Shown: positions 1 through 64,000 of the stretch, one piece after another
Layout of the letters: the number at the start of each line of letters is the position of its first letter
How positions within the stretch are numbered: position 1 is the stretch's first letter
Sequence record: LT603033.1
Direction: 5' to 3' (one strand)
DNA: 64,000 nt
The notes under the pieces: model-generated
The model's database searches: none
Seen by the model: the letters and a program-made list of their open reading frames with translations, nothing else
What the model was told of the DNA's origin: nothing
Translations under genes and position numbers: made by a program

Positions 1-189
1 GGAAAGTATATAGTAATATTTCTATGTATCTAAATGATGAATATCACTTTCAACAATCTACAATAGAAGAAGTATTGTTCAGTACTGAAGAATTAAAAGA
101 ACTATATTACTGGTATAATTATTTCACATCTTGACATTATTGTGGGTTTATCCTACAATACATGATGATGCTGCATTGAGGATAAATTT

Positions 190-600
190 ATGAGTTTAGA
201 TTTACACAATGAACTAAAATATTTTTTAGATTTGGACATATCAGAATTGAACCACCACGTCAATCATATGACTAGTACTGTATGGTGGTCTAATGATCAA
301 GACGACCCAATTATCCAACTAAGTGATGAATCGTCAATTATGCGATTTTATAAGATTAATTATAAAAAGAACATCAAGATCACATATGTACCATACAAAA
401 ACATACTACTAGTCGAAACACTTAATCCAAGTTCTTTATTAAAAATCACCGATTTAGATACATTACAAACAAGTGAATCTTTATTCCAACGTTCATTAGT
501 TGATGATCTTGGTGGTATTACTTTTGAAGATATATTACAATTGAAGAATATGTATAGTGAATTGTTGGAGATTAAAAACACTTTAGTAATGGGGAATTGA
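190..600 (+). CDS. FQ-motif family protein
   Basis: C-terminal TSESLFQRSLVDDLGG motif. Confidence 0.75.
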   Translation: MSLDLHNELKYFLDLDISELNHHVNHMTSTVWWSNDQDDPIIQLSDESSIMRFYKINYKKNIKITYVPYKNILLVETLNPSSLLKITDLDTLQTSESLFQRSLVDDLGGITFEDILQLKNMYSELLEIKNTLVMGN

Positions 601-601
601 T

Positions 602-1006
602 ATGGTAAGTTTACTAGATATTGATAATACCAGTTTAGTGCTGGTGAAAAAAGGTTTAATTCCAAATTCTAAAAAAATTGATTATGCTGTTATTGAAACA
701 AATATTGGAAATATCTGGTACGACTCTGAAAGGGATATTGTGTTTAGCTGTGTAGACAGTGATCGTTCTGAATGTTGTAGAGTCGGTCATGACGGACAAT
801 TTGTTTTTGAATTTCGTTATTGGAAGGACGCAAAATTTCACCAAGAACTGGTTGCTTTGTCAAATGAACTATATACAGAAGAATCGTTCTTCATGGCTAG
901 TACTATTAATGATTTTGGTTCAGTTACATTTGAGTACTATAAAAAAATATACGCACTATCCAGAGAAGTTATGAAAATTATCAGAACTGCTGAAGGTAAA
1001 GAATAA
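602..1006 (+). CDS. FQ-motif family protein
   Basis: TEESFFMASTINDFG; abuts previous ORF. Confidence 0.75.
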   Translation: MVSLLDIDNTSLVLVKKGLIPNSKKIDYAVIETNIGNIWYDSERDIVFSCVDSDRSECCRVGHDGQFVFEFRYWKDAKFHQELVALSNELYTEESFFMASTINDFGSVTFEYYKKIYALSREVMKIIRTAEGKE

Positions 1007-1007
1007 C

Positions 1008-1385
1008 ATGACTACTATATATGATATTTTGGGTGTTCTGAGTAGAAATATAGATGATGATTTTGTTATTGTTCAAGATACTAGAAATACATTTCAACTA
1101 CCAATAGGTTCACCAGATAGGTTAATTTTTAATAGATACTCAAATGAACTAACTTACATCCATGATGGGATTGCAATTGTATCAGTTTCTATAAACGACT
1201 ATACAATACGATATGTATATGACTTCAACGATTATTGTACAAGAATCCACAGTATTGATATTTCCGAAGAGGAACTATTCCAATTGTCATTGATTGAGAA
1301 AAATGTAATAGGAATTACAGAAATTGGTATTATTAAAAAAGCATTAAACTATACAAATATAAGAATTAATGGTGGGTGCAGATGA
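1008..1385 (+). CDS. FQ-motif family protein
   Basis: SEEELFQLSLIEKN; abuts previous ORF. Confidence 0.75.
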   Translation: MTTIYDILGVLSRNIDDDFVIVQDTRNTFQLPIGSPDRLIFNRYSNELTYIHDGIAIVSVSINDYTIRYVYDFNDYCTRIHSIDISEEELFQLSLIEKNVIGITEIGIIKKALNYTNIRINGGCR

Positions 1386-1837
1386 ATGTTGACGAAATAA
1401 AAAATCATTTTGAAATTGCAATGTCATGTGAATTTGACACACAACGTGTTCATGACCCGAAAGAACATATACGCATTTGTTGTGAATTGTCAGATGATTG
1501 TAATATTTTTATTGGAAAAACCTATGACATGATCGATCTTTCATGTATAGATCCATTGGAAAGAAAAACAAAATATTTATATCTGTACAACACAACATCA
1601 GATACGATTGCAATACAACTAATATCAACCACAACATCCCACAGTTATTATAACATAACTGAGGTTAGTAGTTTAACGTTAACCGAAGAAGGATTCTTTC
1701 AACAATCGCTTATTCGTGAAATTGGTGTTAGTTATGATGAGTTAAATGTATTAGTAGATTGTTTCGAAAAATTGAGTACTTTTGTATTATCCCTTTTTAA
1801 TATACAGTCGCAAAATCCAATGGTGGTGAAATGCTAA
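1382..1837 (+). CDS. FQ-motif family protein
   Basis: TEEGFFQQSLIREIG; ATG overlaps upstream stop (ATGA). Confidence 0.75.
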   Translation: MNVDEIKNHFEIAMSCEFDTQRVHDPKEHIRICCELSDDCNIFIGKTYDMIDLSCIDPLERKTKYLYLYNTTSDTIAIQLISTTTSHSYYNITEVSSLTLTEEGFFQQSLIREIGVSYDELNVLVDCFEKLSTFVLSLFNIQSQNPMVVKC

Positions 1838-2271
1838 ATCCAAGTAAATTTCTCCACTTACTTTCGATAACATCAATACCGGATCTTACCAGTGAAACTA
1901 ATGAATATCGTGAAGCTGGGGTGGTGTCTATGGAACTCGATACATTTGACCACAAATGCTATGTGACATATGACCCACCGCGTTATGGTAAAGAACATTC
2001 TTCTTTTATTTTTGTATTCGTATACACTGTATATGATAATACAACACTTGATGATGTTTGTATTGACACTTACGAAATTTGTGATAATATCATAACTGAT
2101 GACAACAATAACTCATTTGATATGTCACTATATAACACAGAAGAATCGTTGTTTCAACTTAGTACTGTTATTGATGCACCATCATTAGAAGATATAAAAC
2201 AATTTCAAGAACATCTTGACGCAGTTCGTGAGATGTTCTATAATCATTATCCAGAAGTAGAGTTCAATTAA
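1831..2271 (+). CDS. FQ-motif family protein
   Basis: TEESLFQLSTVIDAP. Confidence 0.75.
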   Translation: MLNPSKFLHLLSITSIPDLTSETNEYREAGVVSMELDTFDHKCYVTYDPPRYGKEHSSFIFVFVYTVYDNTTLDDVCIDTYEICDNIITDDNNNSFDMSLYNTEESLFQLSTVIDAPSLEDIKQFQEHLDAVREMFYNHYPEVEFN

Positions 2272-2285
2272 CTAAAGGTAATAAG

Positions 2286-2546
2286 ATGACTAAAGTAGTT
2301 CGTAAACGCCACATGATGAACATGGATGAATTTCGTACATTTGACAAATATCGTACTATGTTTCGTATGCTTTCACAGGGCCGTCCAATCGTCATTGTAA
2401 CAGAGAATTACATGTCACCTGAGATTATGTTTGGTAATTATGAAAAGGTCTTCATGTTGTACGTGAAGCGTGGATTACTTACAATCAAGACATTAGCTGA
2501 AGCAACTGATGAAGATATGGATGGTGATAATACCTTTACCATGTGA
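2286..2546 (+). CDS. hypothetical protein
   Basis: ATG ORF after AAGG RBS, co-directional. Confidence 0.7.
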   Translation: MTKVVRKRHMMNMDEFRTFDKYRTMFRMLSQGRPIVIVTENYMSPEIMFGNYEKVFMLYVKRGLLTIKTLAEATDEDMDGDNTFTM

Positions 2547-2554
2547 GGAAATAT

Positions 2555-2632
2555 ATGTCTGAAAAGCCAAAAGAACCATTAGATCGTGATGATGATTTTT
2601 ATGACGAACGATATGGAGATGATGATGAGTGA
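2555..2632 (+). CDS. acidic 25-aa micropeptide (MSEKPKEPLDRDDDFYDERYGDDDE)
   Basis: Read by hand; GAGGA RBS; stop overlaps start of next gene; below ORF-track cutoff. Confidence 0.55.
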   Translation: MSEKPKEPLDRDDDFYDERYGDDDE

Positions 2633-2876
2633 ACATAGTGCTGTGCTTAAAAAGATTTTAAAGGAACTTGATGGTGAGTTTAATGTCACAGAAGAAGAAT
2701 ATCAGCATTGGAAGAAAGGTTTTGAACAACTAACCGAGTATGATAAAGTGTTCAATATGATTGGTGTAATTAGCCAGTACTTACTTGGTGGAGGACGTGC
2801 AAGTGCTTCAATTCTGGCATCTGCAATCATCTGTACATCACGATGGTGTGATGAAAAAAGTTTGGAAGATTTCTAA
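2625..2876 (+). CDS. hypothetical protein
   Basis: Track ORF 2586..2876; start moved to ATG after GGAG. Confidence 0.65.
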   Translation: MSEHSAVLKKILKELDGEFNVTEEEYQHWKKGFEQLTEYDKVFNMIGVISQYLLGGGRASASILASAIICTSRWCDEKSLEDF

Positions 2877-2928
2877 ATAAGATGCTATAATATATTATAG
2901 TACCTTAACAATATAAAAAGGATTTTAT

Positions 2929-3789
2929 ATGAAACCTATCCGAGTACTTTCTCTTTTTAATGGAATGAGTGTGGGATATATGGCATTGCAAGATGCTGGT
3001 ATCCCAGTTGAAAAATATTATTCATCCGAAATTGATAAGTACGCAATAGCTGAATCTCAATCTAACTTTCCTGATATTATCCAATTGGGTGATGTAACTA
3101 AGTGGAGAGAATGGGATATTGAGTGGGACAAAATAGATTTATTAATGGGTGGTTTCCCATGCCAAGCCTGGTCAGTTGCAGGTAAACAGGGTGGTTTAAA
3201 TGATATACGTGGGCAGTTATTTTTAGTAATGGTTGAAATTTTTGATCATATCAAAAGTCTCAATCCTAACTTGAAATTTCTGTTTGAAAATGTTAAAATG
3301 AAGGAAGATTTCAAAGAATACATTAATAGTATTTTAGGAATCACGCCAGTACTGATAAACTCCCAGCATTATACGCCTCACTTCAGGCAGAGATATTACT
3401 GGTACAGTACTGATAAGCTTTTTATACCACCTGCATTATCCAATGCACCTAAACTTCAAGATATTATTGAAGATGGTTGGTACACTGACAGAACCGCTTC
3501 GTACTGTATAGATGCTAACTATTTTAAAGGTGGTGATTGTAACCAGTACTTTAATAAATCCAGACGACAATTGGTGTTTCGTGACCCAGTGATCAGTCGT
3601 CAATATCTATTAGAGAATGGCAAAAGAAATATTGACTATAGACACTTAAGTGTAGTAGAATGTTGTAAATTACAGGGTGTTCCTGAAGATTTCTTTAAAG
3701 TGTCTAGTAAGACACAAGCATACAAAATGCTTGGGAATGGATGGACTATGCCAGTTATATCACATTTACTAAGAGAGATATTCTTTTGA
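2929..3789 (+). CDS. DNA (cytosine-5) methyltransferase
   Basis: Motif I VLSLFNG, catalytic GGFPCQ, FENVK, RQRYYW, C-terminal KMLGNGW in canonical C5-MTase order. Confidence 0.92.
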   Translation: MKPIRVLSLFNGMSVGYMALQDAGIPVEKYYSSEIDKYAIAESQSNFPDIIQLGDVTKWREWDIEWDKIDLLMGGFPCQAWSVAGKQGGLNDIRGQLFLVMVEIFDHIKSLNPNLKFLFENVKMKEDFKEYINSILGITPVLINSQHYTPHFRQRYYWYSTDKLFIPPALSNAPKLQDIIEDGWYTDRTASYCIDANYFKGGDCNQYFNKSRRQLVFRDPVISRQYLLENGKRNIDYRHLSVVECCKLQGVPEDFFKVSSKTQAYKMLGNGWTMPVISHLLREIFF

Positions 3790-4271
3790 ACATAAACAAA
3801 TACCAAACTTATATAAAACGTACAGAAAGTTTCAAACGGCTGGCTGTAAAATCTGAATTAGAATTTAATTTGTATTATCCTAATATTGGTGATGAGGTAT
3901 TTTATTGCTCTCATTCAAAGAATGGAACTTTACTTAAATCGGGTAAAGGAACTATTGTTGATATGACCGCAAATTTCAGAGGTAAACTTAATGTAATGTA
4001 CAAAGTACAAGATTCAAGTACTGAGTGTATTCATGAAGTGATGCATAACATACCTGCATATCCAAAAGATTTTGTTCAGCTAATATCTCGAAGGGAGAAA
4101 CCTATGTTTTATTGTGGTTATGACAAATTAACCAAACAAATTATTCCTAATACTATGGGAAAATTTAAAAGTGATGTGAAATCTGAACTTGAAAAGAAAT
4201 TTGGCACGTCATGGGAAACTGAAAACGAGTTTATCGAAATTCGTTTAATTGAAATTACTATACTTGAATAA
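3741..4271 (+). CDS. hypothetical protein
   Basis: Fills gap between MTase and next gene; true start probably near TTG 3786. Confidence 0.6.
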   Translation: MDYASYITFTKRDILLNINKYQTYIKRTESFKRLAVKSELEFNLYYPNIGDEVFYCSHSKNGTLLKSGKGTIVDMTANFRGKLNVMYKVQDSSTECIHEVMHNIPAYPKDFVQLISRREKPMFYCGYDKLTKQIIPNTMGKFKSDVKSELEKKFGTSWETENEFIEIRLIEITILE

Positions 4272-4313
4272 TTACAAATCCACGCATTGCGTGGATTTTT
4301 CATAGGTGCATAT

Positions 4314-4829
4314 ATGCCAATTCCTTATGTTAAAATTATTAATAATATTCTCGATTCATGGGAAGATGTTATTACTGGTATAAAGCAACCATCACCAGTA
4401 CATGCTTTATCTGGGAAACTTCAATTCAGAATGTCAAACCAAACTGAAACATTTAATAATCATGATATTTGCATTACATTAAAAACACCTATTAGTATTG
4501 TAATTAAAAAAAATAAAGATGATGAATTGACATTATCTATTGGTCGTGATAAAATCATTTTAAGTAATTTGTCTGAAGAAGAATTCTTTCAAAGAAGTAC
4601 TATTATCGATATGAAAGATTTCACATATGAATCATTGGTTGAACTCAATACACGTTTTAACGATATTCAGGAACGATTGCGACCAATTCTTCGTATCGAA
4701 GAAGAAGCCTGGATTGAAAGTATTAGGAAGATGCAAGAAATGTTGAAAGAAAATATTAACAATCTGGGTAAAGCTACAATGGAATTTGGTAAAACTTTTA
4801 AACTGAACTTTTCAAAGGATCGTAAATGA
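4314..4829 (+). CDS. FQ-motif family protein
   Basis: SEEEFFQRSTIIDMK; ATG after AGGTG. Confidence 0.75.
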   Translation: MPIPYVKIINNILDSWEDVITGIKQPSPVHALSGKLQFRMSNQTETFNNHDICITLKTPISIVIKKNKDDELTLSIGRDKIILSNLSEEEFFQRSTIIDMKDFTYESLVELNTRFNDIQERLRPILRIEEEAWIESIRKMQEMLKENINNLGKATMEFGKTFKLNFSKDRK

Positions 4830-5281
4830 AAATTGATAATTTGATTCATGTTTTAGGATCTTTACATAAAATATTATCACATCTACATGAGATAAAGAAA
4901 CTGGGATATAACATCTCAAATTCAATTGAAACTACATTTAAATATCAATCAATTACTGGTGATGGTTATTACATAATCGAATATACCTATGAAACCGATC
5001 CAGACTTCTATCCTCTTACGTTGAGAATTTATCCAACAAATCCGAGAGGAATTCACGACATATCATCAATTTCACTTGATCCAGATGGTGAAACGAGTAT
5101 TGAATACAATAATGATTCAAAACCAGAATTTTACATTGATGATATTAAAATGATGTTCAACGATGAATATGTGTTCCAGCAAAGTACTGTGCATGATGTT
5201 GGAAGTACTAATGGACAATTTTGGAATACATGTTATTATCATATGATTGAAATTTGTAAATTACTAAAAGGCGATGATTAA
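4826..5281 (+). CDS. FQ-motif family protein
   Basis: NDEYVFQQSTVHDVG. Confidence 0.75.
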   Translation: MKIDNLIHVLGSLHKILSHLHEIKKLGYNISNSIETTFKYQSITGDGYYIIEYTYETDPDFYPLTLRIYPTNPRGIHDISSISLDPDGETSIEYNNDSKPEFYIDDIKMMFNDEYVFQQSTVHDVGSTNGQFWNTCYYHMIEICKLLKGDD

Positions 5282-5664
5282 TGAAATACAGCATTGAAGT
5301 ACATTATACTACAGGGGACACTGAAAATTGTTATGACGTTCTTAATACAATTGATATTCAATGGTCTTCTAAAGAGGAAGCAGTTGCTGCTTTACAGTGC
5401 CTAAAAGAGCATTGGGTGTTTTATATGAAGCAAGATAATTGCTATACTAAAGAACACGAAACTATCGTTGAAAATGCTAAACAAAAAGAGTGGTTTGACC
5501 CAATATCACCAGAATATTCATTCTTGGTTAAAGTTGGCGATGTGACAGTTCCATTACGAACACCGTGGAACGGCTACTTTGAAACTCTTCATAATGCACG
5601 AGTTGTCGCTGTTGATAATCCTGAGCAAATCGATTTCGATTCATTGGACTGGAAAAAACTATGA
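5281..5664 (+). CDS. hypothetical protein
   Basis: Translationally coupled ATG ORF. Confidence 0.7.
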   Translation: MKYSIEVHYTTGDTENCYDVLNTIDIQWSSKEEAVAALQCLKEHWVFYMKQDNCYTKEHETIVENAKQKEWFDPISPEYSFLVKVGDVTVPLRTPWNGYFETLHNARVVAVDNPEQIDFDSLDWKKL

Positions 5665-6104
5665 CAGTACTGCACCAATTGAAGAAGGTTAAGCATCCAG
5701 TTGTATACGAGGATTGGAAACGACAGAAGTTGATGGGTGATTTTTATTTCCCAAAATCTAAAGTTCTTGCGAATTCAAGATGTACATATGTCACACATAA
5801 TGATAAAGATACAGTATTTGTTGAAATGGGTTTCAATCCATCAAATACAATGTTCAGTACTAACCAGACATTTTACAAATTTCATATCCAAAAAGATTCA
5901 TTTTCTATCATGATTTTAAAACTTTTAGTTGAAGATCTGCTATACCGTGGTGAACGTGTTCCTTTATCATTAGTGGATATTCCTTATGATAATTTAGAGG
6001 AAATGTACTTCCAACAGTTGACAGTACAAGAAAACTTTGGTATGATAGGACTTCAAGAGTTAGAGATGATTAAGCAAATTCGTGATATCTACTTTAAGGA
6101 GTAA
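5661..6104 (+). CDS. FQ-motif family protein
   Basis: LEEMYFQQLTVQENFG. Confidence 0.72.
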   Translation: MTVLHQLKKVKHPVVYEDWKRQKLMGDFYFPKSKVLANSRCTYVTHNDKDTVFVEMGFNPSNTMFSTNQTFYKFHIQKDSFSIMILKLLVEDLLYRGERVPLSLVDIPYDNLEEMYFQQLTVQENFGMIGLQELEMIKQIRDIYFKE

Positions 6105-6106
6105 CT

Positions 6107-6250
6107 ATGCCAGTACGTAACAGTACTTCACGCTTTACGCTTCAACAGAAAGCAGATCTTTTGAATATGGCTAACAAAGATTCTAATTTTTACTATCTAG
6201 TACTCGGTGGGTCAGTAGAAAAGATTGACCTACGTGAGTGTATGAAATAA
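6107..6250 (+). CDS. 47-aa hypothetical protein
   Basis: AAGGAG RBS, ATG 6107, TAA 6248-6250; read by hand. Confidence 0.55.
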   Translation: MPVRNSTSRFTLQQKADLLNMANKDSNFYYLVLGGSVEKIDLRECMK

Positions 6251-6267
6251 CAAAAAGGGGACTAAAA

Positions 6268-6438
6268 ATGAGTCTACGTGAATCATGGGAACAATTTAAA
6301 GAAGAGATTGGTTATCGTGGTGTTAAGATTGAAAAAATCAATCGAACCGAAAGCATCAAAGCCAGTACTAATGGCACTACCTATGATCGTTATGATGAAA
6401 AGTATGGTTTGCATTCTAAACCGAAGGATACTGAATAA
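6268..6438 (+). CDS. small hypothetical protein
   Basis: ATG after AGGGG. Confidence 0.55.
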   Translation: MSLRESWEQFKEEIGYRGVKIEKINRTESIKASTNGTTYDRYDEKYGLHSKPKDTE

Positions 6439-6577
6439 TGGTATACACTAACATTTTTACTGGTATTATGCGTAAATTTATTAATGGTACTGGATACGTA
6501 TCTAATGACAACGGTAGTACATGGGTAAAAAATAATACGTCTGAATCTTTAGTAAAAAGTCTTCCGTATTATAAAGC

Positions 6578-6606
6578 TTGACACATGAAAATGGAGTATA
6601 TATAAT
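6578..6606 (+). promoter_or_regulatory. sigma70-type promoter
   Basis: TTGACA-N17-TATAAT; -10 lies inside inverted repeat GGAGTAT..ATACTCC. Confidence 0.8.
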
Positions 6607-6638
6607 ACTCCTATATTAATTAAACGAGGATATACGAA

Positions 6639-10260: not shown

Positions 10261-10445
10261 AAAACATCCAATAGGAGAAGTAATGAGTAATCAAAAAATC
10301 GACTTAGTAGTAAAACTTCAAGAGATTCAAGCACTAGCTAAAGACCTTGATAACACACGTGCATCAGTAGTTGATTCACTATGTGCAACAATCCTGACTG
10401 TTTTTACAGATTACGAAAAGAAATCTGATTAAACGTTACTTTGTA

Positions 10446-10474
10446 AATACCCAGTCAAGTACTGGGTATTTTTT
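10446..10474 (+). terminator. intrinsic terminator
   Basis: AATACCCAGT-CAAGT-ACTGGGTATT followed by T-tract. Confidence 0.75.
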
Positions 10475-10486
10475 TAAGGAAATAAA

Positions 10487-11496: not shown

Positions 11497-11497
11497 C

Positions 11498-14341: not shown

Positions 14342-14755
<414 letters not shown>

Positions 14756-14812: not shown

Positions 14813-14850
<38 letters not shown>

Positions 14851-15214: not shown

Positions 15215-15979
<765 letters not shown>

Positions 15980-31777: not shown

Positions 31778-31805
31778 TTGACATAAGATATCAGTACTGT
31801 ATAAT
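31778..31805 (+). promoter_or_regulatory. sigma70-type promoter with AGTACT in spacer
   Basis: TTGACA-taagatatcagtactg-TATAAT. Confidence 0.8.
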
Positions 31806-35875: not shown

Positions 35876-36108
35876 TACTAAGTTTTGTTGTTGCACTATT
35901 GTTTATGTTCTATCCTACACTAGTGGCATTAGCCACTAGGCGAACGATGGTAGATCTCACTACTGTATTCTTGCTAAACGTGGCATTAGTACTGGTGTCT
36001 ATTATCATTCCAGTGAGCTTTACAGTTATTGATATTATTTCGGTATTACTCTTCGTGTTAAGTTATCTTATGCTTATTGAAGAAACAAATGTTGACAAAC
36101 GTTCGTAG
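35866..36108 (+). CDS. small membrane protein
   Basis: Three hydrophobic segments. Confidence 0.65.
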   Translation: MYLVLSFVVALLFMFYPTLVALATRRTMVDLTTVFLLNVALVLVSIIIPVSFTVIDIISVLLFVLSYLMLIEETNVDKRS

Positions 36109-36119
36109 TACTGTATAAT
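36092..36119 (+). promoter_or_regulatory. sigma70-type promoter with AGTACT in spacer
   Basis: TTGACA-aacgttcgtagtactg-TATAAT. Confidence 0.8.
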
Positions 36120-46718: not shown

Positions 46719-46746
46719 TTGACAAACACATTCAGTACTGTATAAT
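46719..46746 (+). promoter_or_regulatory. sigma70-type promoter with AGTACT in spacer
   Basis: TTGACA-aacacattcagtactg-TATAAT. Confidence 0.8.
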
Positions 46747-49547: not shown

Positions 49548-49787
49548 ATGAAACTATCTTTTATACGTTTAGCAGAATTCTTCGGTACTGATATAATTAC
49601 ATTACAACAAATTGCAGACAATACTTCATTAAGTACACAAGAAGTACTTGACTTGGATGTAATTAAGTGTGATAATACTTCCATCGATTACAAAGAAGGT
49701 CTTGTCGAAAAAGATAAGATTCAGGCTAAGATTAATGGTGCTGGACGGGTTCAGTACTGGAAAGGAGTTTTAAGTAATGCCAGCTAA
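49548..49787 (+). CDS. hypothetical protein
   Basis: GAGG RBS. Confidence 0.7.
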   Translation: MKLSFIRLAEFFGTDIITLQQIADNTSLSTQEVLDLDVIKCDNTSIDYKEGLVEKDKIQAKINGAGRVQYWKGVLSNAS

Positions 49788-51663
49788 ATTAACCCCTAAA
49801 CAAGCAAAAGAAAAATTCAACAATAAAGTATTAGAACATAACGTTCCAATTGAAGCTGATTATAGTAAGTATGAAAATGCCAAATTAAAAAACATCCAAG
49901 TAGTTTGCAATGATGTATTAAAACACAAATCAGGCATATCACAAGTATATCTTATGGATCACGCAAACCTCACACACCCATCTAAAAAATTTGGTTGTCC
50001 TGAATGTGAAGACTGGTATAATGGTCATGCTAAAAGTTTAGATATTTTAATTGTTAGGGAAAGAATTAATTCTTGGATTAGTACTTATGGTGGCATAATT
50101 GATACAGTTAGTGGTGAAGTTGAAGTTTATAAAAATAATTCAACAAAAATACCATATATTTGTAAAAATGGAACTAAAAAAACGCTTACTATTTCTACAC
50201 TGGGTGATGAAATCGGTTGTAATTGTTCTAAATGTAAATCTGAATTAATATCAGAAATCGAAGATAACAATGAATATACATCCATGACTACTGATGATGA
50301 TTGTGTTACAATTTCCCATTTTATATTTGGGGATGATGTTGCATTCTCGTGGATTTCACCATTGGAAATGAAAAAACATGGTTACGGTCTTGCCGAAAAA
50401 ATGAAAGAAAAAGCATTGTCGGTTGGTAAAAATATTATTGGATATGCAATATCATCTCTTAGTGAATGGAAAAATGAAAAAACTCCTGTAATAACGGAAC
50501 ACGAAGGAGTATTATATCGTATTTCCAGAGCATCATATTTGATCAATAATAATATAGTACATAGACCACATTATACAAAAAATAATTTTTTATATTATTT
50601 TTACAAATGTTCACCTAACAATCAACTTATTACACCAATCCTAATACCTGATGATGTTGGTACAAAAAAGAAAATTAAAGTATGTTATAAATCATGTGGG
50701 TGTGAATACGATATATCTGTGGACGTTATAATGAACAGAAATTTAAAAACTTGTGGAAACTGTAAAAATATAGATACTAAAACATTTATAGAAAAGTGCT
50801 TGGAGTTCAAATCAAGTGGAGAATATATCTATGATAGAGTAAACTATATAAATCAAAGTACACCTGTAACTATAGTTCATAAAATTTACGGAGAATTCAA
50901 AAGTACACCACAAAATCACTTAACACATTTAAAAAACAGTTTGAAATATGATACAGCTAACTTTAAAATAAAAAATCTAACTCAATTTAAAATTAAAGCA
51001 AATGAAGTTCATAATAACTTATATAATTATGATAAAGTTGATTATGTAAATTCTTCAACGAAAGTATTAATAACTCATCCAGTGTATGGAGACTTTTGGC
51101 AAACTCCAAATGGGCATTTGGCAGGTAAAGGACACCCGAAAGTCAAAGGTGGTGTTCCTTATACATGTGATGAATTTAAAATTAAAGCAAATGAAGTTCA
51201 TAATAACTTATATAATTATGATAAAGTTGATTATGTAAATTCTTCAACGAAAGTATTAATAACTCATCCAGTGTATGGAGACTTTTGGCAAACTCCAGCA
51301 AGTCACCTTTGTGGGTCTGGTCATCCACTTGCGGCTGGTCATTCTCAGCAATATGCATATATTCATAATATTTTGGATGGTGATTTATCTGTAGCATTGA
51401 AATATGGTATTGAAAAGCAGAAAGGTAAGAGGGTTATGCAGCAAAATAAAAAATCATTATTTAAAATTGAATCGTTACATACGTATTTTTTCACATCTGT
51501 GTTTGAGTGTAAGGAAGCTGAAAAAGAATGTAAAAAACTATTTGGTAAAGGCGTTTTAACTAAACAAGAAATGCCAGATGGTTATACTGAAACTACTACA
51601 CCAAACAACATAGATAAAATTATTGCAATCTATGAAAAATGGGGTGGGGTGAAAAAAAACTAA
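49777..51663 (+). CDS. homing-endonuclease-like protein with DUF723-type repeats and C-terminal GIY-YIG/T5orf172-like domain
   Basis: Repeats F..KA.EVH...Y.YDKVDY.NS.TKV.I.HP..G.F.QTP..HL; Cys pairs; C-terminal YAY..KYGI..R...DGYTE. Confidence 0.62.
   Translation: MPAKLTPKQAKEKFNNKVLEHNVPIEADYSKYENAKLKNIQVVCNDVLKHKSGISQVYLMDHANLTHPSKKFGCPECEDWYNGHAKSLDILIVRERINSWISTYGGIIDTVSGEVEVYKNNSTKIPYICKNGTKKTLTISTLGDEIGCNCSKCKSELISEIEDNNEYTSMTTDDDCVTISHFIFGDDVAFSWISPLEMKKHGYGLAEKMKEKALSVGKNIIGYAISSLSEWKNEKTPVITEHEGVLYRISRASYLINNNIVHRPHYTKNNFLYYFYKCSPNNQLITPILIPDDVGTKKKIKVCYKSCGCEYDISVDVIMNRNLKTCGNCKNIDTKTFIEKCLEFKSSGEYIYDRVNYINQSTPVTIVHKIYGEFKSTPQNHLTHLKNSLKYDTANFKIKNLTQFKIKANEVHNNLYNYDKVDYVNSSTKVLITHPVYGDFWQTPNGHLAGKGHPKVKGGVPYTCDEFKIKANEVHNNLYNYDKVDYVNSSTKVLITHPVYGDFWQTPASHLCGSGHPLAAGHSQQYAYIHNILDGDLSVALKYGIEKQKGKRVMQQNKKSLFKIESLHTYFFTSVFECKEAEKECKKLFGKGVLTKQEMPDGYTETTTPNNIDKIIAIYEKWGGVKKN
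50984..51297 (+). repeat. 125-bp perfect direct repeat, period 189 bp
   Basis: 50984-51108 identical to 51173-51297, in frame. Confidence 0.92.
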
Positions 51664-55008: not shown

Positions 55009-55038
55009 AAAATCCAGTACTATCAAGTACTGGATTAA
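55009..55038. terminator. probable terminator hairpin
   Basis: AATCCAGTAC-TATCAA-GTACTGGATT. Confidence 0.6.
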
Positions 55039-56915: not shown

Positions 56916-58085
56916 CTAAGCAGAAGGCATATCCTTCATTTTAATAAATGAAAATTGTGTACCAGTATTTGTGGTTTGATCAGTAAAATATGAATTACTA
57001 CCAGCCCAGTACAATTCATTATTAACTATACAATATATAACAGAACTCGAACTCTGTGAATACACACGACTTATATTTGATGGTTCCACTCCAGTACTGA
57101 ACTGAACCGAACCCAACTGTGAACTTGGTATCACATCAGTTGGTCTACCTAAACCATTAACACCAGCCCCACCACCACATGTATATACCCCAGTACTATC
57201 AGTTGATATATTAACATAACCATTCCCGGCATTTTCAAATAGTATTTCACTGGGAACAACACCAAATCCTGTAAGATCTATTTTCCTGAATGTAGTGTAA
57301 ACAGTAGAACCACCAACACCTCTTCCACCATAATCATTAGAACCAGCCATATAGATACTATATCCAGAACTTCCTAAACATAATAACTGTACGTTGTCAT
57401 ATAATATTTGCATAGATATAACGTTATCAGGAATACTCAATACCGTAAAAGTAGTTAAAGAAGAACTTCCAATATTACTACCAACCGATGTTCCACATCT
57501 GTAGTACTTACCGCCTTTTATATAATGGAACGATGAACCGCCTAACTTATGTGCTCCTATTGCACTTACCCCAGTATCTATAAGAATGGGAGATACAACT
57601 TTGTTATTAACACCTAACTCAGATCTACTGTTCATACCGAACCCATATAAACGACCATCTAACATCAATATTAGTGTACTACCGGAAGTACCCGCTGACG
57701 TAAATTCTATATTCTTTATTTGCGACACGTCAATACCTACAAATAATGAAGTTACTTCAGTCCAGTTAACATATGAACCACTAGCCCCAAAATATCCACC
57801 CATGTATAGACCTGCACAATATAACTTATTATCAACAGTCTTTATTAATGTACCGGATACACACGCCCAAAAATCATCAACTTCATAGGGTACATGTACC
57901 CAACCACCTAATACATCACTAGCATCCCCTGTACCTAATTTATAGTTCGAACCAGAACCACGCATGTACATATTCCCTGTACTATAAAGTAATCCGACAT
58001 GTAATTGACTACCATCCAATTTCTTTATTTCAGGAAGAGTTGGTTTAATATTTCCGTACTTTAACATTCTTCCAAAAGGTAACAT
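56916..58085 (-). CDS. RCC1-like beta-propeller protein
   Basis: MLPFGRMLKYGNI; YGFGMNSRSELG, GSNDYGGRG repeats. Confidence 0.8.
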   Translation of the reverse strand: MLPFGRMLKYGNIKPTLPEIKKLDGSQLHVGLLYSTGNMYMRGSGSNYKLGTGDASDVLGGWVHVPYEVDDFWACVSGTLIKTVDNKLYCAGLYMGGYFGASGSYVNWTEVTSLFVGIDVSQIKNIEFTSAGTSGSTLILMLDGRLYGFGMNSRSELGVNNKVVSPILIDTGVSAIGAHKLGGSSFHYIKGGKYYRCGTSVGSNIGSSSLTTFTVLSIPDNVISMQILYDNVQLLCLGSSGYSIYMAGSNDYGGRGVGGSTVYTTFRKIDLTGFGVVPSEILFENAGNGYVNISTDSTGVYTCGGGAGVNGLGRPTDVIPSSQLGSVQFSTGVEPSNISRVYSQSSSSVIYCIVNNELYWAGSNSYFTDQTTNTGTQFSFIKMKDMPSA

Positions 58086-58095
58086 ATTCCCTCCT

Positions 58096-59238
58096 TTATA
58101 TTATATTTAATTTTTGATATGTGGGATATATTTCTTGACTTGGTTTATCTAAAATATATTGTACGTTACCTGCACCATATAAACTACCATCAATAGTAGC
58201 TAATTTAACATTAGTATCACCAGCCACCCACGATGTCATTTTTGATGCACCTGGAACTAAAGTTGTATTTTTTACGCTGGTGGAAACGGAATTTACCCCC
58301 AAACTACTACTTAAGTTATATCCACTACTATAAACTTCACCATTAATTCTAAATTTAACGTATACTGGTAAGTTAACAGCATTACCATAGTTGTAGTTTG
58401 TATGCTTTATAAAACGAAACTCTGAACTTACATATGTTTCCGGTTGAGCTACACTGTATATATTGTATGACTGAAAGGTACTACCAGCCGCAGAATTTAA
58501 TAATCCAGTGTCCCCAGTATAGCCACTAAAATAAACTGAAGTAGCATCACTCCACATAAAACAAGATGTTGCAGTTAAATAAAAATCAATCACATTTGAC
58601 TTAACTACTCTTGGTGTCAGGTAACCAGTACCGCCCACAGTTGTGAAGCAGTTGAATCTGTTCTCACCCCACGCAACAACGTCGCCATTCGATCTTATTC
58701 CACATGCGTTCAGATGACCAAATTGCATTTTAGAAACACCAGTAAGGTTTGTATTTTGTGTCCATGTAGGGGCGTATGTTGTAGTACTTGCTAACCCAAT
58801 CATACCATATAAATTAGAACCTAAAACCCAAACTGAACCATCGGCGTTTACAATAACAGTTGCATGATCACGTGCAACATATATTTCGCTCGCATTGTCA
58901 AATTTGTCTTTGATTAAACTATCAATGTTAATAAAAACATTACCACTATCTCCATATGCATATGCTGCTCCACTAAACCAATATGAACTATCATTTTTTA
59001 AAATAGTTAATCCAGACTGACTAAACCAAAAATTAACCACATTTTCGGCTATTAATGTACGTACTGTAAGTGTTGTTCTATTTCCTAATCCAAATTGACC
59101 TGCTGATTGAGTCCCACTTGCATATAATTTACCATCACTTGTAAGTATTATACAACCATTTATTGTTAAATCTACTTTTTTTATATCAAGTGGGATTATC
59201 ATATTCCCGTACTGAATCATTCTTGCAAAAGGTAACAT
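58096..59238 (-). CDS. RCC1-like beta-propeller protein
   Basis: MLPFARMIQYGNM; GSNLYGMIG, WGENRFN repeats. Confidence 0.82.
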   Translation of the reverse strand: MLPFARMIQYGNMIIPLDIKKVDLTINGCIILTSDGKLYASGTQSAGQFGLGNRTTLTVRTLIAENVVNFWFSQSGLTILKNDSSYWFSGAAYAYGDSGNVFINIDSLIKDKFDNASEIYVARDHATVIVNADGSVWVLGSNLYGMIGLASTTTYAPTWTQNTNLTGVSKMQFGHLNACGIRSNGDVVAWGENRFNCFTTVGGTGYLTPRVVKSNVIDFYLTATSCFMWSDATSVYFSGYTGDTGLLNSAAGSTFQSYNIYSVAQPETYVSSEFRFIKHTNYNYGNAVNLPVYVKFRINGEVYSSGYNLSSSLGVNSVSTSVKNTTLVPGASKMTSWVAGDTNVKLATIDGSLYGAGNVQYILDKPSQEIYPTYQKLNII

Positions 59239-59240
59239 AA

Positions 59241-59306
59241 TTCCCTCCTTTATTCATTATACTATATTTAATACAAATAAGAAAGCCAGTACTCTGTACT
59301 GGCATA
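59241..59306 (-). repeat. intergenic terminator / late-promoter / RBS cassette
   Basis: GCCAGTAC..GTACTGGC-TTTC, TATTAAATA, AAGGAGGGAATT before ATG. Confidence 0.85.
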
Positions 59307-59309
59307 ATG

Positions 59310-60452
59310 TCAATAAGCATCCCAAGGTAATGGTGTCTTTCTAAACCCATACCTAGTTGCGTTCTGCCCATCTCCGGCAATGTATCTACCGGTCCCACAC
59401 TGATATAATTCAGTACTGCTACATATCGCACCACCAATAGTCCCACTACACCACTGTGTTATATTAGAATATAATATTGGTAAATCACTACATTTGGTAT
59501 ATACTGCAACCGTGGCAGTCCCGCTCGGACCACCAAACACACTTCGGTTCGAACCCGTGTAATATATGCCATCTGGACTCATAAATGCAGATGTATAAGT
59601 TGTACTGCAATCCACTGGACTTCTTATATTATTAAGATCGCTTGGGTATGCTCTAGCACCATATGTGTATACATTACCAGCAGTAGTAATACCATTACCT
59701 AACTGACCATCATTTTGTCCACCACATGTAACCAACGATGCAGAACCAGAAACAATTGCAGTAGCATTATACGAAGTACCCATTGCAATAGAAGCACCAG
59801 ACAATAGTTTTGGTGTAACGATAGCTGTTGTATTACCCTGGCCTAATTCACCATTTGTGTTTCGTCCCCATGCGTATATAGAAGTCGTATCCAATCGACA
59901 TAGTACTGAACCATAACTAAACGTATATCGCATGTCATTTACAGCAGAAGGCAAATTAACCTTAGTTGCAACACTAATAACACCACCAGTAACACCACTG
60001 TTTGCGTTCATATTACGTCCATATGCGTATAAAGAACCATCAGCAGTTTTAATATGCATCATGCCATCTGTGCAATATAATGCATCGATGCTATCCACTG
60101 CAACTGGACCCATACTGGCAGTTATATCGGTCCACCCAAGCGTGGTAGTACTAGAAATTAAGTTATTTCCTGCGTATAGTATTCTATTATTATTAGTAAC
60201 TACAACTGTATATCTGGCAGTAACACCAATTAATCGAACATCAGTATATATCTTCGACCACGCACCTAGTGAATTGGTATTTGCATCCAAAAAGCCTAAC
60301 TGCCCATCTGTATTGTATCCAATACCCCATGCATCACCTGCACTGTCCAATAACACTTCATGTGAAAAGCCAATCTTAAAATCTTTTATTGTAGGAACTA
60401 CCGGAACTGGTGCAATATTCCCGTACTTAACCATTCTTCCAAAAGGTAACAT
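59310..60452 (-). CDS. RCC1-like beta-propeller protein
   Basis: MLPFGRMVKYGNI at 60452; GYNTDGQLG, WGRNTNGELGQG, GGQNDGQLGNG. Confidence 0.85.
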   Translation of the reverse strand: MLPFGRMVKYGNIAPVPVVPTIKDFKIGFSHEVLLDSAGDAWGIGYNTDGQLGFLDANTNSLGAWSKIYTDVRLIGVTARYTVVVTNNNRILYAGNNLISSTTTLGWTDITASMGPVAVDSIDALYCTDGMMHIKTADGSLYAYGRNMNANSGVTGGVISVATKVNLPSAVNDMRYTFSYGSVLCRLDTTSIYAWGRNTNGELGQGNTTAIVTPKLLSGASIAMGTSYNATAIVSGSASLVTCGGQNDGQLGNGITTAGNVYTYGARAYPSDLNNIRSPVDCSTTYTSAFMSPDGIYYTGSNRSVFGGPSGTATVAVYTKCSDLPILYSNITQWCSGTIGGAICSSTELYQCGTGRYIAGDGQNATRYGFRKTPLPWDAY

Positions 60453-60519
60453 AATTCCCTCCTTATTCATTATACTATATTTAATACAAATAAGAAAGCC
60501 AGTATCAAGTACTGGCATT
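60453..60519 (-). repeat. intergenic terminator / late-promoter / RBS cassette
   Basis: Near-identical to 59241-59306. Confidence 0.85.
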
Positions 60520-60523
60520 GTGT

Positions 60524-61703
60524 TTATCTAAAAGGAATGCACTTTTTGAATTTATATATATATCCAGTCTCACCTTGTTCAGTAAAATACCCAGGGTTTC
60601 CAGTCCAGTATAAATCCTCACCTATACTAACTACCGATACTGAACCATTACCAATCGTACCAAACCACTCAACATGTGATAAGTCAACACTATCATCAAA
60701 GAATTCTATTGGTAATATTGAACCATAATTCCCAGAGAATGCGTTGCGGCCTAATCCAGCACCATTAGAATTATATCCCTTACCATTCGTATTAATAATG
60801 TTAGTACTGGATTTTATTGCATTAACATAGGATACTGGTGAAAGTTTATCGAATGAATTTGCTGTTATATCGGTATAGGGATTTGTAGTAAATGATGACC
60901 TTATTATAGCAGTATTTTCAGAACCACCTATAGTCAACTGTGTGTTCCAACCAGCCGCCATTAAAGACAAAGCAGATGTACTACTTTGAACAATCAAACG
61001 TGTTACCCATCGTGTAGCTTGTACTGCAATTACATGAGAACTACCAAGATTCAATGCAGTAAAAGTAGTAATAGGATTATTATCACCGGTTCCTAATTGA
61101 TAAAAAGTATTCTCACCACAACGATAATATATACCATCTTTTATATAGTGAAAGTTTCTGCTCATTTCACTAGATGCAATTGCAGATACACTAGTGTCTA
61201 TTAAGAGTGGAGATGTAATTGGTGTAGTTGCTGTACCCAATTCACTTGCACCATTCATGCCTATACCATATAACTGACCGTCACTTGTTAGTATTAACAT
61301 GGAATTGTTAGTACTGGTTGATGATGTTATTTTTATATCTTTTATTGAACTCGGAGAAATAGATCCAAAATATGATTCACAACGAGTCCATGTTGAAACA
61401 GAAGATGATATACCAAAAACTGAGTTAGTTCCACTATAGTACAATTCCCCTTGTTTTGTTCTAATTATAGTACAATATAAAGAACTCCAGAAATCATCAA
61501 CACTATAAGGACATAAAACCCATCTATCTAAAAAAGATGAACCAGTAACTCCCATTTTTGATAATTGGTTTCCGTCCACGCATATATAATGACCCATCAC
61601 TGTATAATACGCTTATTGAATTTTCATCACTATTAATTTTAACAACAGTATCTTTGCCAGGGGCAATATTCCCATAATTCATCATTCTTCCAAAAGGTAA
61701 CAT
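60524..61703 (-). CDS. RCC1-like beta-propeller protein, frameshifted near 61569-61575
   Basis: MLPFGRMMNYGNI starts at 61703 (read by hand), stops early; body continues in track ORF 60524..61600. Confidence 0.72.
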
Positions 61704-61770
61704 AATTCCCTCCTTTATTTGTTATACTATATTTAATACAAAAAGAAAAGCCAGTACTGAGTACTGGCTA
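61704..61770 (-). repeat. intergenic terminator / late-promoter / RBS cassette
   Basis: GCCAGTACT-C-AGTACTGGC hairpin, TATTAAATA, AAGGAGGG. Confidence 0.85.
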
Positions 61771-61775
61771 TTATA

Positions 61776-62966
61776 TTATAATTGTCGGGGTGTATCTAGT
61801 ACATATCTAGTTGTACTAGGACCACCATCATCATAAGTTCCGGTTGAATATATATTTTTCATATCAGCAGTTAGAAAAGTACGATACGAACCGCGATATA
61901 TTTTTATTTTATCATACATAGAATATGTTATTTGTGTAGGCATTGGACATGCAGTAAACTTACCAACAGTTGCACTAGTACCAATACCCAATGAACCAGC
62001 ATAACTACTGGCATTTAAACCAGTTGCATATACACCAGTACTCGTAACTAGTATACTAGATTGTGTTGGGTATCCTGTATGAATTGAATACAAAGTTCCA
62101 GTTGGTAATGTCGTACTATTGCTCCCTAATACAGCAAGTGCCGAACTGGTTGTGGTATTGTTACCCCATGCACCATTACTCGCTAAACCACCAACTAGAA
62201 ACTGACGTGCACCAGAACTTGGATTCTCAACCAAAGCACTGACTGCACCACTTGAGCATCCAGTGTATTGTAACGTTTTTGTGTATGTTGTACTTGGTTT
62301 ATATAAAGTATATTCATTAAATGGTGTCCATGTGGTACTGGTACTTATACCTGACGTACCACCACCAATATATAAATTATTTTGTGTATCAAAAAACATT
62401 ACACAGTTATTTGTTGACTGTATTTGTGCAATATCAACATTAGGCGTGACAGCTTTTACAAATGATCCATCTGTTATTTGTTGAGTACTACCAGTACCAT
62501 CAGCGAATTGTCTAGCCCCACTCCAACCAGTACTCCATATTGTATTATTATCCATTAATACCGTAAACCACGTAGTACCTCCATACATCTGTTTAATTGA
62601 AGTACTTGAACTTTGCGTGTACAAATTTTCAATATATTGGTTATAACTTAAAAACGTAGTAGTACTAGTTGGTAAACCAACATGATCACCATATCCACAA
62701 TAAAAATAATTTGAGTCATTGTCTTTTACTAATAAAGTTCCTTGTGTAAGCCAGCAATCGTTAACGTTTTCTCTAATTAATGTCCATGATTTTAATGCAG
62801 TGTTGTTTCCTCTACCGAATTTCCCAAAACTATTATTCCCACGTGCATATAGTTGACCATCCGTATACAGAACCACAACATCTAAATCAGTTGGGATTAT
62901 TTTCTTAATTTGAAGTGGTACTGGGGCAATATTCCCATAATTCATCATTCTTGCAAAAGGTAACAT
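61776..62966 (-). CDS. RCC1-like beta-propeller protein
   Basis: MLPFARMMNYGNI; RGNNSFGKFG, GSLGIG repeats. Confidence 0.82.
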   Translation of the reverse strand: MLPFARMMNYGNIAPVPLQIKKIIPTDLDVVVLYTDGQLYARGNNSFGKFGRGNNTALKSWTLIRENVNDCWLTQGTLLVKDNDSNYFYCGYGDHVGLPTSTTTFLSYNQYIENLYTQSSSTSIKQMYGGTTWFTVLMDNNTIWSTGWSGARQFADGTGSTQQITDGSFVKAVTPNVDIAQIQSTNNCVMFFDTQNNLYIGGGTSGISTSTTWTPFNEYTLYKPSTTYTKTLQYTGCSSGAVSALVENPSSGARQFLVGGLASNGAWGNNTTTSSALAVLGSNSTTLPTGTLYSIHTGYPTQSSILVTSTGVYATGLNASSYAGSLGIGTSATVGKFTACPMPTQITYSMYDKIKIYRGSYRTFLTADMKNIYSTGTYDDGGPSTTRYVLDTPRQL

Positions 62967-63033
62967 AAATTCCTCCTTTATTCATTATACTATATTTAAT
63001 ACAAATAAGAAAGCCAGTACAGTGTACTGGCAT
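62967..63033 (-). repeat. intergenic terminator / late-promoter / RBS cassette
   Basis: Near-identical to 59241-59306. Confidence 0.85.
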
Positions 63034-63037
63034 TAAA

Positions 63038-64000
63038 TCATTGTATAAATGACATATCAACTTCTGTATAACTAAGAATGTTTTGTCCAGCAATTCCCCC
63101 CATTACTACCATAGCATACCCACAATAATATAATTGCTCAGTGTCCGTAAGTATAAGTGAACCAGATGGAGTGCGTACCAAATTACACGAACTATTAAAC
63201 GAAGTATACGAAGGAGTATATGAGTACTGATTAATATTATTACCAACACCTAATTGACCAAATCCATTCGACCCAGATGCGTATAGAACTTCATCACCTT
63301 TAGCTATATGTGATGCCATGTTACTAACACACGTATATAGAGTATAAACTCCTGAACTCAATAATGTCGGAGTTTTGTATTGTATATCGGTAGATGAAGA
63401 AGTACCACCTGTGCCAAATTCGTTCCCGTATTGTGCACCGAACTGTTTACCACAAGCGTACAAATTATTATCCGATTTAATAAAAAATGTACTCTGATAA
63501 CTTACATCAAAATCTATAACATCTGAAGCAATCATCGTCACCCCAGTAATAGAAGTTTGATTACCTGTACCTAACTGATAGTAATAGTTAAAACCACAAC
63601 CCCATAAAGTATTATCTTCTTTTAGGTATATGTTACCAACTGCCTTTTTAACCGAAGTTATAGTATCTACCCTTTTGAATGTGTTAAAAGAATTAATGTT
63701 TGTACCATCACCAAATGATGATAGGTTCGAGTTATTGTTAACTCCACAACAATACAACGTACCATCGTTTGTTATCAAATTCACCTTCATATCATTAAAA
63801 CTACTCATGTATTTTATATCAGAAACATTAATACCACCTGATGTTATCCACGTAGTACAGTCCGTCCACAAAGTTTTTGTATCAGTTACACCAGTGAATG
63901 CCTTCGTGTTACCAGTGATAAAAACTTTTCCAGTACCTTTCTCTTCATACAATTGACAACTACTACTGTTATCTTCCAATAGAACTCGTTTAACATTCTC
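63038..64000 (-). CDS. RCC1-like beta-propeller protein (5'-truncated by window edge)
   Basis: GFNYYYQLGTG, GSNGFGQLGVG; frame stays open to position 64000. Confidence 0.82.
   Translation of the reverse strand, partial: ENVKRVLLEDNSSSCQLYEEKGTGKVFITGNTKAFTGVTDTKTLWTDCTTWITSGGINVSDIKYMSSFNDMKVNLITNDGTLYCCGVNNNSNLSSFGDGTNINSFNTFKRVDTITSVKKAVGNIYLKEDNTLWGCGFNYYYQLGTGNQTSITGVTMIASDVIDFDVSYQSTFFIKSDNNLYACGKQFGAQYGNEFGTGGTSSSTDIQYKTPTLLSSGVYTLYTCVSNMASHIAKGDEVLYASGSNGFGQLGVGNNINQYSYTPSYTSFNSSCNLVRTPSGSLILTDTEQLYYCGYAMVVMGGIAGQNILSYTEVDMSFIQ

Follow-up and report, generated by a model that had tools for sequence, protein, structure and literature searches.

Why does a virulent jumbo phage hold one restriction-type palindrome, AGTACT, at about ten times its expected number, when phages normally avoid such palindromes (PMC6286503)? 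The question is raised by the first 64,000 nucleotides of Escherichia phage vB_Eco_slurp01 (LT603033.1, bases 1–64000, here called “the window”; over bases 1–20000 the match to the record is 100% identical, and record and window coordinates agree). Slurp01 belongs to the species Asteriusvirus PBECO4 and is a 348-kb Rak2-like jumbo myovirus with E. coli MG1655 as isolation host. The window is an early-gene region with about 137 genes, mostly small, of unknown function and on the + strand, together with seven tRNA genes and sigma-70-like promoters; in the CBB paper, the counterpart of this region in a relative is described as early and concerned with host takeover. An earlier note, made from the letters of the window alone, had reported the excess and had proposed a genome-wide binding code for a phage protein.

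We compared the 64 kb of slurp01 with 23–100 kb from each of several relatives and with 100 kb of E. coli K-12 (two 50-kb samples), so that genome-wide totals are extrapolations. The loci of several relatives were analysed by motif counts alone, and DNA polymerase was used as the ladder for phage relationships. AGTACT enrichment is nowhere mentioned in the literature consulted on slurp01 relatives, RaK2, PA5oct, Sharanji and CBB or in the jumbo-phage comparison.

AGTACT is the most over-represented hexamer of the window

AGTACT occurs 183 times in the window, versus 19.1 ± 4.3 times (maximum 31) in 100 dinucleotide-preserving shuffles. This 9.7-fold enrichment is the opposite of restriction-site avoidance, which would be seen as depletion. 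Markov models of order 1, 2 and 3 predict 18.9, 36.4 and 71.1 copies, respectively. Among all 4096 hexamers AGTACT ranks first in over-representation, and it is the sole strongly enriched palindrome, the runner-up, GAATTC, reaching 1.7-fold. The roughly ten-fold excess given in the earlier note is thus borne out, as are its 20 coordinates in the first 6.4 kb, all of them exact, and its expectation of about 2 sites for that interval. Its G+C content of ~30% has to be corrected to 33.7%.

81..63228, no strand: 183 AGTACT sites dispersed over the window, 157 of them genic and 26 outside annotated genes

The density is even along the window (6–16 sites per 4 kb). As had been claimed, the sites lie in coding (157 sites, 2.7 per kb) as well as non-coding DNA (26 sites, 4.1 per kb), and they are denser in the latter. 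Inter-site spacing is near-Poisson and slightly under-dispersed (variance/mean 0.66–0.85; Kolmogorov-Smirnov P = 0.58). The spacing periodicity for which the earlier note had suggested a search was not found; neither periodicity nor clustering nor a preferred position within genes is seen for AGTACT in the window, save for a few pairs about 20 bp apart. Genes without a site number 46 of 138, versus about 53 expected. No 12-mer recurs more than three times in the window, which argues against a REP- or MITE-like dispersed repeat.

The excess acts at the DNA level

The AGTACT excess acts at the DNA level, and the force behind it is strong enough to shift amino-acid sequence. The 157 genic sites occupy all three reading frames, i.e. 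73 as AGT-ACT, 36 as xAG-TAC-Txx and 48 as xxA-GTA-CTx. Shuffling of synonymous codons within genes yielded just 73 ± 6 copies (maximum 91) versus the 183 observed, so that the excess survives the codon and amino-acid correction at which, according to the earlier note, it might have vanished. The codon pairs in question are used 3.5–7-fold more often than expected from codon usage: 73 of the 137 Ser-Thr pairs are coded AGT-ACT (20.7 expected), and the opportunities realised are 33 of 72 for xAG-TAC-Txx (4.6 expected) and 48 of 123 for xxA-GTA-CTx (10.7 expected). The Ser-Thr dipeptide itself is 1.5-fold in excess (137 versus 88 expected; the control, Thr-Ser, occurs 94 times). ACTAGT, a palindrome of the same codons in reverse order, is at chance (20 versus 18.9).

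Codon-compatible positions carry AGTACT in 46% of cases in the early window and in 40% in the replication and structural region of PBECO4, versus 7% and 1% in two outgroup phages, in which Ser-Thr dipeptides are exactly at expectation. Site densities differ more strongly between early and late regions (2.9 versus 1.65 per kb in Asteriusvirus, 5.1 versus 2.1 per kb in GAP32). As the realised fractions are so similar (0.46 versus 0.40), the lower density in late genes reflects fewer codon opportunities and not a weaker force.

These values bear on the view that the word is a by-product, either of codon and amino-acid usage, with AGT, ACT, GTA and TAC favoured, perhaps via phage tRNAs, or of the building blocks of promoters and terminators. 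The phage does encode two fitting tRNAs, and some sites do lie within promoters and terminator stems:

15634..15725, + strand: tRNA-Ser with the unusual anticodon ACT, reading AGT, the first codon of in-frame AGT-ACT
17075–17148: tRNA-Thr(TGT)

However, the occupation of all three frames, the higher intergenic density, the results of the synonymous shuffle and the codon-pair analysis, and the chance-level ACTAGT count all speak against codon usage, and promoter and terminator contexts hold just ~15 of the 183 sites. As the main cause a by-product of either kind is refuted, and we give it practically no weight. AGT makes up 33% of the Ser codons and ACT 46% of the Thr codons; the two tRNAs could be an adaptation to an AGT/ACT usage that is inflated by the DNA word.

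Sites are conserved beyond background and turn over between genera

Conservation at close range was determined by comparison with phage WPEC3 (87% nucleotide identity over 19 kb). Of 52 aligned sites, 44 (85%) are intact, versus 54% for all hexamers and 55% for hexamers of the same composition (binomial P = 7e-6), and the 8 losses are matched by 8 gains. Third codon positions are 96.3% identical inside AGTACT and 77.2% identical elsewhere (Fisher P = 3e-6). The earlier note had named a lack of conservation at synonymous positions among relatives as a ground for rejecting its proposal; the opposite was found. AGTACT sites are under purifying constraint, including at silent positions.

Between genera (17–23 core genes, 66–71% nucleotide identity) the density stays 6–9-fold enriched while most sites turn over. 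PBECO4 and RaK2 share 18 of their 41 and 58 sites, GAP32 and PBECO4 share 10 of 34 and 31, and GAP32 and RaK2 share 8 of 34 and 41, i.e. 1.5–2.3 times the background hexamer identity of 14–19%. Sites that turn over at a held density behave as a large set of interchangeable sites, each under weak selection. By our estimate, the odds ratio of ~10 for the realised fraction would imply a scaled per-site advantage of roughly 2.

One gene of the window stands out by its low AGTACT content:

49777..51663, + strand: homing-endonuclease-like gene, 628 aa (PHROG “HNH endonuclease”), with 1 AGTACT versus 5.4 expected (Poisson P = 0.03)

This gene is a recent arrival that has still to acquire AGTACT. At full length it was found in just four phage records, and its C-terminal domain is common to many unrelated phages. 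Its product had been considered as a clade marker and was dropped in favour of DNA polymerase because the gene proved to be mobile.

AGTACT-rich phages and their outgroups

Every sampled region of nine related phages contains AGTACT in 5–10-fold excess. The enriched clade consists of T4-related jumbo phages, i.e. Asteriusvirus, Alcyoneusvirus, Mimasvirus, Eneladusvirus, Munch and XaC1, and the copy number per genome would be roughly 600–1000 by extrapolation. The nearest outgroups and the host are at or below chance, and the number of sites per kb in E. coli is ~36-fold below that of the window. The counts were as follows:

WPEC3: 61 AGTACT in 22.6 kb
PBECO4, core region: 71 in 43 kb (12 expected)
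RaK2, bases 1–50000: 119 in 50 kb
RaK2, core region: 87 in 42.5 kb (9.6 expected)
GAP32, early region: 253 in 50 kb
GAP32, core region: 105 in 50 kb (15 expected)
XaC1: 128 in 43 kb
Munch: 34 in 23 kb (6.7 expected)
Yen9-04: 42 in 23 kb
pEa_SNUABM_12: 42 in 23 kb
Vibrio phage 2.275.O, outgroup: 8 in 43 kb and 10 in 50 kb (15.6 expected for the 50-kb sample)
Agrobacterium phage Atu_ph07, outgroup: 1 in 23 kb
Pseudomonas phage PA5oct, outgroup: 3 in 50 kb (14 expected)
E. coli K-12, host: 3 and 5 in 50 kb each, at chance

On the polymerase ladder the enrichment arose once, the boundary lying between the branch of the Vibrio phage (50.5% polymerase identity to GAP32) and XaC1 (64.6%).

The flanks of AGTACT are weak and mirror-symmetric

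Beyond the hexamer, information is present just at positions −1 and +1 (0.27–0.42 bits), with at most 0.07 bits per position farther out. In slurp01, PBECO4, RaK2 and GAP32, the sites prefer C at −1 and G at +1 (40–48%) and disfavour G at −1 and C at +1 (4–10% versus a background of ~17%). The pattern is mirror-symmetric and identical in these four genomes from three genera. In the window, C precedes 40% of the sites and G follows 51%; both occur together in 39 sites versus 37 expected, i.e. the two flanks are independent. Two extended forms had been described as frequent, which holds just in part: CAGTACTG makes up 39 of the 183 sites and TTCAGTACTGAA 3 of 183. A palindrome with symmetric flanks points to a symmetric protein, probably a dimer, that recognises the word in the duplex.

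Single-base variants of the word differ by position, the outer ones (NGTACT, AGTACN) being about 2-fold up and the inner ones about 1-fold or below; GTAC is 2.3-fold up. Repair of the very-short-patch type would be expected to deplete a one-base precursor of AGTACT; no such precursor is depleted in the window. Outside the full AGTACT, CCAGTA and TACTGG occur in 33 and 30 copies window-wide, versus 11–13 expected (~3-fold). These copies may be remnants of decayed sites, belong to terminator stems or reflect a wider preference for half-sites.

Avoidance of other palindromes and absence of GCGC

Sixteen palindromes, each expected 3–9 times, are absent from the window, namely CCATGG, TGGCCA, GGTACC, GCATGC, CAGCTG, CTGCAG, GGATCC, GTCGAC, TGCGCA, TCCGGA, CCTAGG, AGGCCT, CGTACG, GAGCTC, CTCGAG and CGATCG. 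GATC is present at about half its expectation (99 versus 186). The same avoidance is found in GAP32 and RaK2 and not in the outgroups. AGTACT as a by-product of the avoidance of GGTACC and CGTACG was rejected, as this would explain just ~10 sites.

RaK2 is without hydroxymethylcytosine genes, and the clade appears to rely on site avoidance rather than on base modification. The closest AGTACT-poor relative, Vibrio phage 2.275.O, carries a queuosine/7-deazaguanine gene cluster (27470–38988; QueF-like, QueC-like, GTP cyclohydrolase I, QueD). This suggests base modification as the anti-restriction route of that phage, which fits the absence of palindrome avoidance there.

GCGC is absent from every AGTACT-rich region sampled (~435 kb, nine phages), with 28 copies expected in the window alone. 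AGTACT-poor phages contain it (PA5oct, 47 per 50 kb; Vibrio phage 2.275.O, 57 and 81; Atu_ph07, 39 per 23 kb; Lactococcus phage PhiL.18, 26), and E. coli has 342 per 50 kb (~7 per kb). In the sampled genomes, the absence of GCGC and the enrichment of AGTACT co-occur perfectly. The absence could be due to a phage-encoded GCGC-specific nuclease or to extreme restriction avoidance. One may go further and suppose that self and host are told apart by a pair of words, with AGTACT as “self”, by which a phage reader protein would protect, organise or license the DNA, and GCGC as the purged target of a phage nuclease that destroys host DNA; we regard this two-word scheme as unlikely.

AGTACT in promoters, terminators and tRNA genes

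The window encodes a sigma-70-family factor (28430–29395) and contains 33 sigma-70-like promoters with at most one mismatch to the consensus. Nine of the 33 (~27%) include AGTACT, versus ~2.3 expected by our estimate from the mean site density. In six of the 33 the word has a fixed spacer position, TTGACA-N9-AGTACTG(A)-TATAAT, and in three of these six the spacer sequence is unrelated:

14343..14370, + strand: early promoter TTGACT-N9-AGTACTG-TATAAT, sigma-70-like, AGTACT in the spacer adjoining the −10 box
14822..14850, + strand: sigma-70-like promoter AGTACTGA-TATAAT
15595..15623, + strand: sigma-70-like promoter AGTACTGA-TATAAT, upstream of the tRNA-Ser(ACT)/Met/Asn cluster
31778..31805, + strand: consensus promoter TTGACA-N9-AGTACTG-TATAAT
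36092..36119, + strand: consensus promoter TTGACA-N9-AGTACTG-TATAAT
46719..46746, + strand: consensus promoter TTGACA-N9-AGTACTG-TATAAT

Three promoters of the same layout are present in GAP32, a member of a different genus, and two of them were annotated by the GAP32 authors. The word is not restricted to promoters, as the 157 intragenic sites are without promoter context. A LexA box was considered and rejected: AGTACTGTATAA matches one half-site of what we take to be that box, and the second half-site is absent from the promoters examined.

A second promoter class does not contain AGTACT. It consists of four near-identical copies of TTGACTTCGGTCAGCC(C/T)TTTTTG(C/T)TATAAT with a short inverted repeat in the spacer (37865–37894, 48567–48596, 49492–49521 and 51673–51702).

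Several terminators of the rho-independent type have AGTACT in their stems, at times with two copies paired:

10445..10471, + strand: terminator-like hairpin, AGTACT in apex and stem, followed by a U run (−13.7 kcal/mol, z −3.7)
55011..55036, − strand: terminator-like hairpin, two AGTACT copies paired as AUCCAGUACU/AGUACUGGAU (−15.8 kcal/mol, z −5.1)
61749..61769, − strand: terminator-like hairpin GCCAGUACU/AGUACUGGC with U run, after an RCC1-like paralogue
59285–59303 and 60498–60516: hairpins similar to that at 61749..61769

The last three lie in a tandem family of RCC1-like beta-propeller repeat proteins (55691–64000, − strand; 7–8 paralogues of ~300–400 aa each), the spacers of which are near-identical and end in terminator hairpins with (G)CCAGUACU stems. 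Two further sites touch tRNA genes, one at 13048 inside the anticodon stem-loop of tRNA-Gly(TCC) and one at 13807, 6 nt upstream of tRNA-Ser(TGA) and just past a TATAAT box.

A proposed symmetric reader protein and its alternatives

On the best-supported reading, AGTACT with its weak symmetric flanks (t-C-AGTACT-G-a, with G-AGTACT-C disfavoured) would be a recognition word in double-stranded DNA for a protein of two-fold symmetry, which the phages probably gained at the base of the clade. Each site would matter little and selection would act on density, so that sites are interchangeable and turn over between genera. The protein would mark and coat phage DNA as “self”, a role open to the word because the clade appears to rely on restriction-site avoidance and not on modified bases, and the contrast in density to E. 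coli DNA would provide the discrimination. Where AGTACT sits in the spacers of sigma-70 early promoters, the same protein might act as an operator-binding regulator of early transcription. We tentatively favour this combination of marking or coating with early-promoter regulation because the word has a fixed place in promoters of two genera, sets phage DNA off from host DNA and belongs to phages that appear to rely on avoidance. We infer the existence of the reader, its encoding by the phage and its function from the sequence patterns. The binding code proposed in the earlier note agrees with the DNA-level excess, the silent-site constraint, the restriction to one clade, the absence from the host and the mirror-symmetric flanks, and its transcription-factor variant with the spacer position in some early promoters; for neither was a reader protein identified. 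The packaging, nucleoid and self-mark functions also proposed there would be conceivable tasks of such a protein.

Several points weigh against a marking and regulating protein. When all 137 proteins of the window were scanned against Pfam and PHROGs, neither a DNA-binding family nor a reader was detected; the scans returned just RCC1-like repeats, the sigma factor, DenV, an AAA ATPase and the methyltransferase. Most sites are intragenic, near-Poisson and uniform along genes, as any genome-wide force would leave them, and AGTACT is present in just ~27% of the promoter-like sites. A repair system that restores sites would also yield site conservation, and the functions as self-mark and regulator are ones that we infer.

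Among the alternatives, a HIP1-type methylation word deserves most attention. A phage methyltransferase would modify AGTACT or its GTAC core, and sites would be kept abundant by the use of the methylation (strand discrimination in repair, timing of replication or transcription, protection) or by methylation-dependent mismatch repair, as Elhai proposed for HIP1. The phenomenology matches, i.e. a hyper-abundant palindrome, genic and intergenic, conserved beyond background (PMC5861425), and so do the outer-position bias of the one-base variants, as reported by Elhai for HIP1 (PMC4390886), and the increase of GTAC itself. Sites lie ~350 bp apart on average, a density near that of GATC in the E. 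coli sample (4.8 per kb). The clade does encode methyltransferases, namely the C5-cytosine (m5C) enzyme of the window and a Dam-family enzyme that is syntenic in GAP32 and PBECO4, and further ones were reported for CBB and Sharanji. Two window features are relevant here:

2929..3789, + strand: C5-cytosine DNA methyltransferase, a candidate AGTACT writer for which no link was found
3741–4271: open reading frame that shares 49 nt with the 3′ end of the methyltransferase gene, a dcm-vsr-like arrangement (WPEC3 annotates a shorter start)

However, no methyltransferase of the window or of the sampled relatives could be tied to AGTACT. The distribution of the m5C enzyme, which is shared with phi92-like phages at 51% identity, gives no clean link, and the published RaK2 bisulfite data indicate CpG methylation for it. 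A Lactococcus phage with a 48%-identical homologue of the Dam-family enzyme has no AGTACT at all. Neither of these indirect tests spoke for a role as writer. The neighbours expected from deamination, AGTATT and AATACT, are not depleted (80 versus 76 expected), and the overlapping reading frame was rejected as a repair partner, having no Vsr-like signal and weak matches to immunoglobulin-like chains. We consider methylation rather unlikely, though the most probable of the alternatives. A non-adaptive drive, in which a clade-specific bias of repair, gene conversion or recombination converts near-cognates to a functionless AGTACT, would account for the uniform realised fraction in early and late regions, the near-Poisson scatter, the low density in the recently acquired mobile gene and the equal gains and losses relative to WPEC3. 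It is hard to reconcile with the lack of a depleted one-base precursor, with the conservation of positions well above background within and between genera, with the fixed promoter position in two genera and with a force that shifts amino-acid sequence, and we consider it quite unlikely.

The reader might also be a protein of the host Enterobacterales, e.g. a nucleoid-associated or division-control factor. All of the enriched phages have hosts among the Enterobacterales or came from isolation on Xanthomonas, their Vibrio, Pseudomonas and Agrobacterium relatives are not enriched, and filamentation of Sharanji-infected cells was reported. The core of the SlmA-binding site, which we take to be GTGAGTACTCAC, contains AGTACT. 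Yet its presumed GAG/CTC flanks would place G before and C after the hexamer (−1 and +1), the least favoured choice in the four phage genomes, so that a SlmA site was rejected, and AGTACT is at chance in the host genome; a host reader seems improbable. A role at the RNA level, with AGUACU as the cleavage or binding site of a phage ribonuclease or regulator or as a self-pairing stem, would fit the higher density of early regions and the pairing of two copies in terminator stems. An RNA signal has no need of a palindrome with mirror-symmetric flanks, though, and the difference between early and late regions vanishes when calculated per codon opportunity, making this role very improbable.

Comparison with other genome-wide words

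The closest counterparts of AGTACT are HIP1 (GCGATCGC) and the alternate palindromes of cyanobacteria (PMC4390886, PMC5861425), which are likewise at least 10-fold over-represented genome-wide, in all frames and between genes. AGTACT falls among such HIP-type short palindromes with its 183 versus 19 copies in the window. It shares with HIP1 a conservation beyond background, an excess not explained by codons, the outer-position bias of its variants and a frequency of about one per gene. In contrast to HIP1, which has 8 bp, is GC-rich and is found in cellular chromosomes, AGTACT has 6 bp, is AT-rich and is found in virulent jumbo phages, and it also holds a fixed position in promoter spacers. 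For HIP1 a periodicity of 10–90 kb was reported; within the 64 kb of the window the short-range spacing of AGTACT is near-Poisson.

Other known words and proteins resemble AGTACT in part. Chi, KOPS and the DNA uptake sequences are present in many weakly selected, interchangeable copies, each word being read by one protein machine that thereby treats own and foreign DNA differently. AGTACT has the same dense, interchangeable copies, but those words are asymmetric and strand-polar, and AGTACT, being palindromic, cannot carry orientation. The phage-encoded proteins TF1 of SPO1 and p6 of phi29 bind the whole phage genome in preference to host DNA and act as repressors at early promoters. The cue is hydroxymethyluracil in the DNA for TF1 and the bendability of the DNA for p6. 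Their genome coating could serve as a working model for an AGTACT reader, with the difference that they use no discrete hexamer, and no homologue of either was found in the Pfam and PHROGs scans of the window proteins. AGTACT is also the restriction target of ScaI and Eco255I, and here it is enriched about 10-fold in a clade that purges many other palindromes.

A hyper-abundant selected palindrome is thus of a kind known from cyanobacteria. New are its occurrence in virulent phages, the choice of an AT-rich restriction-type hexamer, the setting of extreme palindrome avoidance and the operator-like position in promoters. Because a clade that purges palindromes gains this one ten-fold, biasing silent sites in every frame as well as protein sequence, the finding points to a genome-wide system for reading DNA that has so far gone unrecognised in ~350-kb phages, most of whose genes have no known function. 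It is also a counterpart of the 30-year-old HIP1 problem of cyanobacteria that can be studied by experiment with a laboratory E. coli as host, and the density of AGTACT together with the absence of GCGC is a simple signature of the clade for metagenomes. Should AGTACT mark “self”, this would reveal how own and host DNA are distinguished by a phage that has neither modified bases nor a phage nucleus.

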